Assembly (NCBI GenBank): GCA_039096225.1
Contig: JBBPEB010000014.1
Location: 1,922,001 to 1,986,000 of the forward strand
Direction of reading: 5' to 3'
DNA from: Blastocystis sp. Blastoise
Taxonomy: Eukaryota > Protista > Bigyra: Opalinata
DNA: 64,000 nt
The notes under the pieces are model-generated. The model saw only the letters and a list, made by a program, of their open reading frames with translations. It ran no database searches and was not told the DNA's origin. Positions 37,801 through 39,311 of this stretch are shown piece after piece. A program made the translations under genes and the position numbers. Position 1 is the stretch's first letter, and every line of letters begins with the position of its first letter.

Positions 37801-39311
37801 ACTATACTATTATATATATTCTATACTATACTCTTCTATACTATACTATACTATATATAGTCAGCTAATAGTATAGTTCCTATATATACAAGTGAAGATC
37901 TTGCTACATTTGCTGATGTCAGTGAACAACAATATAACGAATGGAAGAAACAATTTCCGGGTGATAAGAATAGTACTTCATTATTACCATCTGAGTGGAG
38001 TTCAATGGGACAAACTATTACATTACCTATTTCTTCTTTCAATACATGGACAGTAAGTGACAGTATATTAACATATTTAAATGACACAATGTATAATTGT
38101 GTTGAAAAAGAAGTTAAATTATCACTCACTTTCGATTTTACGAGAAAGTCACCTTCTGTATATATATATATATATTATTATTATTATTATTATTATTATT
38201 ATTATTATTATTATTATTATTATTATATATATATATAGGATGCTTTAATATCTAGTGGTTCAGTTGAAGTGCCATTTACACAAGATCAATGCACATATCC
38301 TTATATATATATTATTATTATTATTATGATTATTATTTTTATATATTATTATATATTCTGTTTCTTAATCCCTCACATCCCTCGCTGATGCGTTCCAAAT
38401 GAATTATCCCGCTCCTCATTCAACATCTGTTATTTTCCCTAAATTGTATATAATAATAATAATAATAATTATTATTATTATTATTTTTATTATTATATAT
38501 ATATATATATAGTATTCCCCGTTTATACCAATTGGGATCTAGTTCAACTGCAAAAGCGATTGATAGCGATACTGAAGCATTTAATGATCTAGAAGTATAT
38601 ATATATATATATATATATATATATATATATATATATATATATATATATATATATATATATATATATATATAGATAACATTATCCTATACTAATGATGATA
38701 AATTGGGTTATCAACTTATTTGGCAAACGAAGAGCACTACACCCATTTCAAAAGGATTATTTATGAATGGAATTGAATTCTGGGTTGTTAATATGAAAAC
38801 TATTACTGGTATTGTTGCTACTGGTTTATCTTCTCTTGGTGGTACTTCTATTATTGCTTTATATGCTGCTATTATTCTTACTCTCTCTTCCACTTTACAT
38901 AGCTTCCTTATTCCTGAAACCGCTCAAATACTTTACTTAACACTCGACGACCCGCGGTTATTACTTGAATTACTTCATGCCATGTATATTTGCAGAGCTT
39001 TACAATATCCGTATATATATATATATATATATCAAATAAACTGATACTACTATTTATAAAATTCTTAAATACGCTTAACATATATATATATCAAATAAAT
39101 TTTAATAATATTATAATAATAATATACTAATATTATATATATATATATATATAGAGGTCATTTGAAAGATGAAGCCAAGATATGTCGTACAATATTTACA
39201 ATTTTCCGTTCACCAGAAATGTTAGGTGCTTTAACTGAATATCCATCTACATATAAAGTATTAGTAGAAGATATAAATATTAGAGATGTTACAGGTAAGA
39301 AGAAACAATAA
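25873..39311 (+). CDS. PIEZO: Piezo-type mechanosensitive ion channel (~50 introns)
   Basis: All exons join in one frame. Hallmarks: YYIQISANQIRKGYP, IPFLFELSEYISWSFTTTSL..DWMMVQQI, LLPLILFS...NPV, SIIALYAAIILTL, LDDPRLLLELLHAMYICR...DEAKICRTIFTIFRSPEML. Confidence 0.93.
35729..35844 (+). other. U12-type AT-AC intron (Piezo)
   Basis: 5' ATATCCTTT; branch-like TCTTTAAT at 35827-35834; 3' AC. Removal restores frame: VVLWA-N-AFWLVLKFIIQ. Confidence 0.85.
36983..37063 (+). other. U12-type AT-AC intron (Piezo)
   Basis: 5' ATATCCCTT; TTTCCTTAAT branch motif present twice (37025, 37044); 3' AC. Restores YCVIMF-TYLIFVVP. Confidence 0.85.
38295..38376 (+). other. U12-type AT-AC intron (Piezo)
   Basis: 5' ATATCCTT; branch TTTCTTAATC at 38361-38370; 3' AC. 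Restores FTQDQC-T-SLADAFQ. Confidence 0.85.
38595..38672 (+). other. Intron consisting solely of G(TA)38G
   Basis: Flanking Piezo exons join in frame (FNDLE-ITLSY); interior is an uninterrupted TA dinucleotide repeat. Confidence 0.85.

Follow-up and report, generated by a model that had tools for sequence, protein, structure and literature searches.

Can an intron that consists of nothing but a dinucleotide repeat be removed from a transcript, and how would such an intron come into being? The question is raised by a Piezo gene in a 64,000-nt stretch of the genome of Blastocystis sp. Blastoise (GenBank assembly GCA_039096225.1, contig JBBPEB010000014.1, positions 1,922,001 to 1,986,000 of the forward strand), which is referred to below as the window and is numbered from its first nucleotide. 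Blastoise is a tortoise isolate with a GC content of approximately 21%, from a study that gives 21–23% (Lind et al.; PMC10690189). Its assembly comprises 34 contigs (33.3 Mb), and the window itself has approximately 21% GC and is rich in simple repeats. Read directly from the letters, positions 38595–38672 are a G, 38 units of TA (copy number as assembled) and a G, 78 nt in total. An earlier interpretation of the window, made without database searches (the sequence-only reading), had described the tract in exactly these terms and placed it within Piezo, and the flanking Piezo matches in Pfam agree with that placement. We conclude, with a probability of roughly 75%, that the tract is an old U2-type, phase-0 GT-AG intron of the Piezo gene, in which a (TA)n microsatellite has taken the place of the whole interior.

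Evidence for splicing of the tract

The Piezo gene (25916–39308) spans approximately 13.4 kb and contains at least 48 introns. Pfam matches in the region of the tract comprise Piezo_THU9_anchor (37433–37768) and two parts of Piezo_cap, profile positions 3–84 at 37864–38168 and 172–268 in the exon at 38673–39008. The gene is apparently present in the public annotation only in fragments; KAK8805824.1 (P0004) is a 207-aa piece, the start of which is an internal methionine in the exon at 38377–38445.

The tract is almost certainly a real phase-0 GT-AG intron. A phmmer search of the full library with the exon at 38673–39008 retrieved KAK8805824.1, with 100% identity, and this protein maps exactly onto exons at 38399–38445, 38513–38594, 38673–39010 and 39155–39308. 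The annotated model thus excises 38446–38512, 38595–38672 and 39011–39154. The pipeline behind the annotation was informed by RNA-seq and used STAR junctions with at least three reads, StringTie, BRAKER3 and Mikado (PMC10690189). Residues 8–183 of the protein match positions 120–296 of the Piezo_cap profile in one colinear stretch (79 bits, as compared to 41.5 bits for the downstream exon alone), and the match continues across the junction FNDLE/ITLSY, which is in frame. Excision of the tract therefore does fuse conserved exons, as had been proposed. When the tract is read in the frame of the upstream exon, it gives GTA TAT ATA ... TAG, so that a retained copy would stop translation at 38670–38672, ahead of the most conserved Piezo module. 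The exons 3′ of the tract encode this most conserved part of the protein and must be read in frame, since they are 68–77% identical to those of a relative (described below).

These observations also bear on explanations outside the spliceosome, in which the tract is retained and translated or is removed from the DNA, in the way that TA-bounded sequences are eliminated in ciliates. The tract is indeed bounded by TA and its 78 nt are a multiple of three, as the sequence-only reading had pointed out, but retention brings in the in-frame TAG, a TA-to-TA excision that leaves a single TA would remove 76 nt and shift the frame, and Blastoise, a stramenopile, has a U1 and a U2 that are both canonical. 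In-frame retention and elimination resembling that of ciliate internal eliminated sequences were both ruled out by the reading frame, and we consider any non-spliceosomal explanation extremely improbable.

With respect to RNA, run X1 (probably RNA of Blastoise) contains a fraction of 0.48 of the words sampled from 29400–39399; the fraction expected from exon-only 31-mers under the exon model is 0.50, and DNA would give approximately 1. Among the matches of the searches with the exon and with KAK8805824.1 there were no transcript-derived proteins, only the NCBI model and open reading frames from genomic sequences of relatives. Separately, 19% of the sampled words from the same region were found in run X2, a poly(A) gut metatranscriptome of 2025, and it seems that Blastoise or a close relative of it is expressed in this sample from another animal gut.

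Age of the intron

The relative used for comparison is represented by Blastocystis genomic contigs L002–L009 (41–43% GC, including GCA_019973095.1). Contig L007 (41% GC) carries a colinear ortholog of the gene (1066–10812, corresponding to 25916–39305 of the window in a tblastn chain), and the introns of the relative have a median length of 33 nt, a GC content of 43% and the consensus GTAT(G/A)...TAG. At the site homologous to the tract the relative encodes ...YNDLL, followed by a 33-nt GT...AG segment that was found in eight contigs (L007 10189–10221), and then LHLEYAEDSPLGPYLLWN. The window encodes ...FNDLE, followed by the (TA)38 intron, and then ITLSYTNDDKLGYQLIWQ. The two introns share phase 0 and the codon boundary, in an alignment free of gaps. 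Among 40,974 positions of the 20.5-kb locus, the best match to the first 18 residues of the downstream exon lies immediately after the intron of the relative (score 39, z 6.5). Since an ordinary 33-nt intron with this boundary and phase is present in the relative, the (TA)38 intron predates its TA content.

The sequence-only reading had suggested a different history, a de novo gain in which slippage lengthened an exonic GTAG to G(TA)nG, which later became spliceable. Any (TA)n flanked by Gs automatically begins with GT and ends with AG, slippage is clearly active in the Blastoise genome, and ten introns of the gene are absent from the relative, so that gains in this lineage are possible. An intron that is older than its TA content, however, does not allow this origin. 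Excision of an expanded GTAG would moreover cost the exon four bases and put the reading frame out of register, which is at odds with the gapless alignment of the junction, and a seed in phase 0 would carry a stop codon. The same reading had named a lineage-specific intron position among Piezo orthologs as a check of its proposal. This check was run, and the position is shared with the distant relative, as are the positions of all nine introns of the gene that have only A and T between the terminal Gs (9/9; A/T-only introns in the following). None of the ten introns found in the window only (27222, 29128, 30566, 32136, 32700, 32893, 33054, 33290, 34576, and 35260) is A/T-only, which is a trend and no more (one-sided p ~0.06, hand calculation). 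We therefore regard a de novo gain of the (TA)38 intron as highly improbable.

At least nine introns are present in the relative only (e.g., at L007 7034, 7443, 7898, 8007, 8686, 10276, and 10516), and there has been intron turnover on both sides of the comparison.

Intron architecture across the gene

The intron statistics given here and below cover 44 GT-AG introns of the Piezo gene, the intron at 33618–33734 being left out throughout. Approximately ten alignment gaps had been resolved wrongly by automatic placement (spurious AT-AC or GC-AG pairs, or two introns per gap), and their splice sites were reassigned by manual reading, with short junction peptides helping the placement. The introns at 31277–31403 and 32395–32546 are placed with less certainty.

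The median intron length is 97 nt, and the introns have 8.1% GC vs. 30% for the exons. Nine introns are A/T-only, and fifteen have at most two internal G or C residues. The 5′ consensus is GTATATATAT (also given as GTATATAT). At the 3′ end, every intron has a TATAG-type tract. T occupies −3, −5, and −7 without exception (44/44), A is found at −4 in 43/44, and YTRAY is absent from the last 45 nt of 33 introns. In the tortoise lineage, GTATAT(AT)... opens the introns and ...TATATAG closes them. Long TA tracts are nearly always anchored at one of the splice sites: of the TA runs of at least 8 units, 17 lie at the 5′ end, 15 at the 3′ end and one within an intron. With random placement, approximately 2.3 terminal runs of this length are expected where 32 were observed, and the anchoring of TA tracts at intron ends is far from chance.

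The sequence-only reading had listed near-pure tracts at 29442–29538, 36631–36672, 37374–37432, and 62873–62913 (minus strand), and all of them indeed contain only A and T between the terminal Gs. The 17 annotated introns of a paralog on contig C20 are built in the same style; one of them is A/T-only and several are near-pure TA. As this style is shared by the other introns of the gene and by those of the paralog, the (TA)38 intron is no oddity but the extreme of an architecture found throughout the lineage. The features discussed are listed in Table 1.

Table 1. Position of the (TA)38 intron, its Piezo gene and comparable introns in the window.
Feature	Position	Strand	Basis and remarks
Piezo gene, part colinear with the ortholog of the relative	25916–39308	+	tblastn chain vs. 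L007 1066–10812; 44 GT-AG introns, 3 AT-AC, 1 not analysed
Near-pure TA intron, 97 nt, A/T only: G(TA)36 T (TA)11 G	29442–29538	+	Relative: 33-nt intron L007 3532–3564
A/T-only intron, 112 nt, (TA)18 at 3′ end	35933–36044	+	Relative: intron L007 7782–7813
A/T-only intron, 53 nt	36534–36586	+	Relative: intron L007 8363–8393
Near-pure TA intron, 42 nt, A/T only, phase 2	36631–36672	+	Also by manual reading; relative: 31-nt intron L007 8438–8468, phase 2
A/T-only intron, 52 nt	37246–37297	+	Relative: intron L007 8960–8992
Near-pure TA intron, 59 nt, A/T only, (TA)25 at 5′ end	37374–37432	+	Relative: 33-nt intron L007 9069–9101
A/T-only intron, 81 nt: (TA)8, TTA run, (TA)7	38158–38238	+	Frame and homology; intron of the relative at the same place in L002
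A/T-only intron, 67 nt, TA and TAA/TTA repeats	38446–38512	+	P0004 mapping; composition
Upstream exon, 82 nt, terminus ...FNDLE	38513–38594	+	Exact P0004 mapping; 67% identity with exon L007 10105–10188 of the relative
G(TA)38G intron, GT-AG, phase 0, 78 nt	38595–38672	+	Excised in KAK8805824.1; homologous to 33-nt intron L007 10189–10221
Downstream exon, 338 nt, C-terminal part of cap and inner helix region	38673–39010	+	Pfam Piezo_cap 172–268; P0004 mapping
Intron 3′ of downstream exon, 144 nt, (TA)10 at both ends, CTAAT 24 nt from 3′ end	39011–39154	+	P0004 mapping; position and phase as L007 10627–10661
A/T-only candidate intron of another gene, 41 nt	62873–62913	-	GT-AG; open frames on either side join in phase 2

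The recurrence of this architecture is relevant to a technical explanation, according to which an ordinary AT-rich intron, or a far shorter or longer tract, was collapsed to a perfect TA run during assembly or polishing. Long homogeneous TA tracts are difficult for long-read basecalling and short-read polishing, and the five longest tracts of the window cluster at 31–38 units. On the other hand, dozens of introns, spread over two contigs, have the same architecture with TA runs that are shorter and easy to assemble, and the boundaries of the tract match the annotation and the reading frame exactly. We consider an artefact of this kind very unlikely. The five longest pure TA tracts are located at 3213–3286, 11368–11437, 29443–29514, 38596–38671, and 62286–62347 (37, 35, 36, 38, and 31 units, respectively).

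Shorter units of the same form occur elsewhere in the window. A G(TA)8G unit at 28820–28837 opens a 117-nt intron, in which the AG at 18 nt from the donor is evidently skipped, and a G(TA)10G unit is located at 10460–10481. The Piezo gene also contains three U12-type AT-AC introns (35729–35844, 36983–37063, and 38295–38376, plus strand), with ATATCC donors and TTCCTTAAT/TTCTTAAT boxes located 10–15 nt from the AC. The introns at 35729–35844 and 38295–38376 have ATATCCTT counterparts in the relative, and the intron at 36983–37063 corresponds to a 33-nt GT-AG intron (L007 8770–8802), a possible switch between the U12 and U2 types.

Splicing signals and machinery

The only GT of the tract is at its start and the only AG at its end. 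The sequence-only reading was correct in stating that a branch-point consensus and a polypyrimidine tract are lacking. The tract does not contain a YTRAY or yUnAy motif complementary to the GUAGUA of U2 (UnA being absent), because (TA)n cannot contain one, and it has no polypyrimidine tract, as U and A strictly alternate and only the T at −3 is kept. The lack of a branch motif does not exclude membership of the U2 type, since the motif is degenerate in many eukaryotes. The features of a U2-type GT-AG intron that were found are the termini, the restoration of a conserved frame and complementarity to U1: GUAUAUAU pairs with the 5′ end of U1 at 6/8 positions, namely +1 to +3 and +6 to +8, and is mismatched only at +4 and +5. 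A U12-type intron was ruled out, as 38595–38672 has no ATATCC or GTATCC donor and no TTCCTTAAY branch box.

The U1 small nuclear RNA (snRNA) gene at 4241–4394 (plus strand; Rfam RF00003, 86 bits) has the canonical 5′ end ACUUACCU, and the U2 snRNA retains the GUAGUA branch-binding sequence. A second, identical copy of U1 is present on contig C26. The helix-hairpin domain of SF1 is encoded (78 bits), and a search of the genome for the U2AF-large family gave only generic matches at the level of RRM/UHM domains below the cut-off (C26). As both U1 and U2 are canonical, their sequences give no sign of snRNAs that have co-evolved with the TA-rich introns, and the candidate explanation of a co-evolved U1 or U2 was ruled out.

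Predicted RNA structure

Folding of the intron with its flanks gives a minimum free energy (MFE) of −41.4 kcal/mol and 34 UA pairs. Of the 14 bases at the start of the intron, 9.2 are paired with the 14 at its end in the ensemble. The sequence-only reading had proposed that the intron folds into a UA hairpin that juxtaposes GU and AG. A long hairpin is indeed predicted, but its proposed role receives less support, as five or more end-to-end pairs are predicted in 21/44 introns only and the lengths of the 5′ and 3′ TA runs do not covary (rho 0.23, p 0.14). Both intron ends nearly always have at least two TA units, and the co-occurrence of end repeats is for this reason saturated.

In both the MFE and the centroid structure, 38582–38591 pairs with 38670–38681, a 10-bp helix with one 2-nt bulge that extends the UA hairpin. 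The partner at 38670–38681 consists of the last three intron bases and the start of the 3′ exon, and its pairing with the 5′ exon may be due to chance.

On this basis it could be argued that splicing is defined by structure, with the UA tract, or the paired 5′ and 3′ TA runs of longer introns, forming a helix that replaces the polypyrimidine tract and U2AF. The hairpin and its extension by the exon-flank helix, the pairing of the end bases across the intron and in 21 of the introns at large, the missing pyrimidine tract and an experimental precedent in fish (PMC4691745) all favor such an arrangement. Yet bridging is not predicted for 23/44 introns, the run lengths are uncorrelated, and (UA)n folds locally as well as across the intron. 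The predicted helices would bury the 5′ splice site, the first 14 bases of which have a median of 11.6 paired, and a U2AF-large-like locus may exist, given the RRM/UHM-type match below the cut-off on C26. We consider structure-defined splicing unlikely. A structural role similar to that of the (AC)m-(GT)n introns of teleosts is possible for the predicted hairpin, and is unsupported as a rule.

Proposed origin and recognition of the TA intron

The reading that we favor, an old intron with a replaced interior, starts from an ancestral Blastocystis intron of approximately 31–36 nt that begins with GTAT and terminates in TAG. With these ends, a TA unit lies inside each splice-site core. The tortoise lineage, in which the intron ends are TA-rich, has drifted towards AT. 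The TA seeds in the conserved GTAT and TAG cores, kept by selection, would expand inward from both ends by replication slippage, and G(TA)nG would result when the two TA tracts meet or the middle is lost. The perfection of (TA)38 implies recent or ongoing turnover, and from the perfect repeat we infer recent or ongoing expansion, and hence introns that have lengthened in the tortoise clade.

Removal would be performed by the ordinary spliceosome, as suggested by the canonical U1, U2, and SF1. Recognition may depend on (a) the pairing of GUAUAUAU (5′ GUAUAU(AU)) with U1, (b) the sharp contrast in GC content between introns (8%) and exons (30%), (c) a branch adenosine supplied by the 3′ UA run approximately 8–10 nt upstream, and (d) the sole AG available, given that the TA tract contains no cryptic GT or AG. 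In the introns of the relative, A peaks at −9. The UA hairpin, which is thermodynamically possible, may shorten the effective intron towards its ancestral length.

Several points weigh against this interpretation. Splicing of the tract is supported by annotation, frame, conservation and a share of words that is compatible with any spliced transcript from this gene. Pairing between the UA repeat and the GUAGUA of U2 is poor, and the branch site is only putative. The seeding model is derived from the anchoring of the tracts, and selection for TA tracts at intron ends would give an identical pattern. The limit of 31–38 units for the longest tracts may be biological (instability, cruciforms) or technical (basecalling, polishing). 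Finally, the paralog on contig C20 (P0005, KAK8792902.1) reads straight through the homologous site, and a homolog with 54% GC (P0007, on contig L023) has no intron there; the intron is therefore old, but not universal among Blastocystis Piezo genes. L023 is a Blastocystis-like contig that encodes the Piezo cap and pore region in one open frame of 246 aa (6001–6741). This homolog has 34% identity to KAK8805824.1 over 148 aa, and may be either orthologous or paralogous to the Piezo gene of the window.

A more far-reaching proposal joins the signals and the structure, in that the splicing signals of the tortoise clade would be a TA-repeat code. The branch A would come from pure (UA)n with almost no complementarity to U2, without a pyrimidine tract or U2AF, and an end-to-end UA helix, or folding of the whole tract into a hairpin, would restore the ancestral spacing of approximately 30 nt measured by the spliceosome of the genus. 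We put this forward tentatively, and think it unlikely. If it were true, G(UA)38G would be a natural minimal-information intron.

Comparison with known systems

A literature search for TA-only introns turned up nothing relevant, and microsatellites and splice signals are not mentioned in the genome paper (PMC10690189). The closest comparison is with the (AC)m-(GT)n introns of teleosts, which have complementary repeats at opposite boundaries and for which independence of U2AF2 was established experimentally (Lin et al., 2016; PMC4691745). As in those introns, dinucleotide expansions that can pair across the intron are found at opposite boundaries, the type is widespread within one lineage, and there is no conventional pyrimidine tract. 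Complementary end repeats that are predicted to pair, as in the teleost type, were found for 38595–38672 and, across the gene, in the 21 introns mentioned above. The teleost introns carry two repeats that are complementary only to each other, whereas Blastoise has a single self-complementary UA repeat that can also fold locally. The Blastoise repeat furthermore overlaps the splice-site consensus and can fill the entire intron, and its bridging is a prediction, made for approximately half of the introns.

Within the genus, ST1, ST3, ST4, and ST7 have ultra-short introns of approximately 30 nt, and the introns of tortoise isolates are longer (PMC10690189). The introns described here share homologous positions and the GTAT...TAG cores with these ultra-short introns, the homolog of the (TA)38 intron in the relative being 33 nt long. 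They differ in that the versions of the tortoise lineage are 42–241 nt in length, have 8% GC and are filled with TA and TAA/TTA microsatellites, and in that they have lost the C/T-rich middle and TGAY-like box seen in ultra-short introns.

Plant introns are said to be recognized largely by their A/U richness relative to richer exons, with branch and pyrimidine signals that are weak or dispensable, a view that goes back to Goodall and Filipowicz in 1989. They consist of U-rich mixed sequence, in contrast to the pure alternating repeat of Blastoise, and the extension of AU-rich recognition to the present case is one that we infer. With respect to intron gain, the model of Rogers reportedly invokes the tandem duplication of an exon segment that contains AGGT. 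It resembles the proposed slippage of GTAG in that a local replication error in an exon creates both splice sites at once. In that model the original mRNA is restored exactly, whereas the excision of an expanded GTAG loses 4 nt, and the Blastoise intron predates its TA tract.

Implications

Taken together, the sequence-only reading is partly supported: the microsatellite-only intron is real, a de novo gain is refuted as its origin, and a hairpin is no more than a possible requirement. An attractive account of intron gain through slippage of GTAG is thereby removed as wrong. A natural and evidently functional G(UA)nG intron is a clean test of the minimal sequence that the spliceosome needs, as it has no branch motif, pyrimidine tract or cryptic sites, and nevertheless precedes the pore module of a conserved channel.

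The genome paper leaves open whether introns shrank in the human subtypes or lengthened in the tortoise clade (PMC10690189). In the Piezo gene, introns of 31–36 nt in the relative are homologous to tracts of 42–241 nt in the window, with perfect microsatellite anchored at the splice sites. Because the microsatellite is perfect the tracts are young, and the change from 31–36 nt to 42–241 nt points to ongoing lengthening of these introns by slippage.

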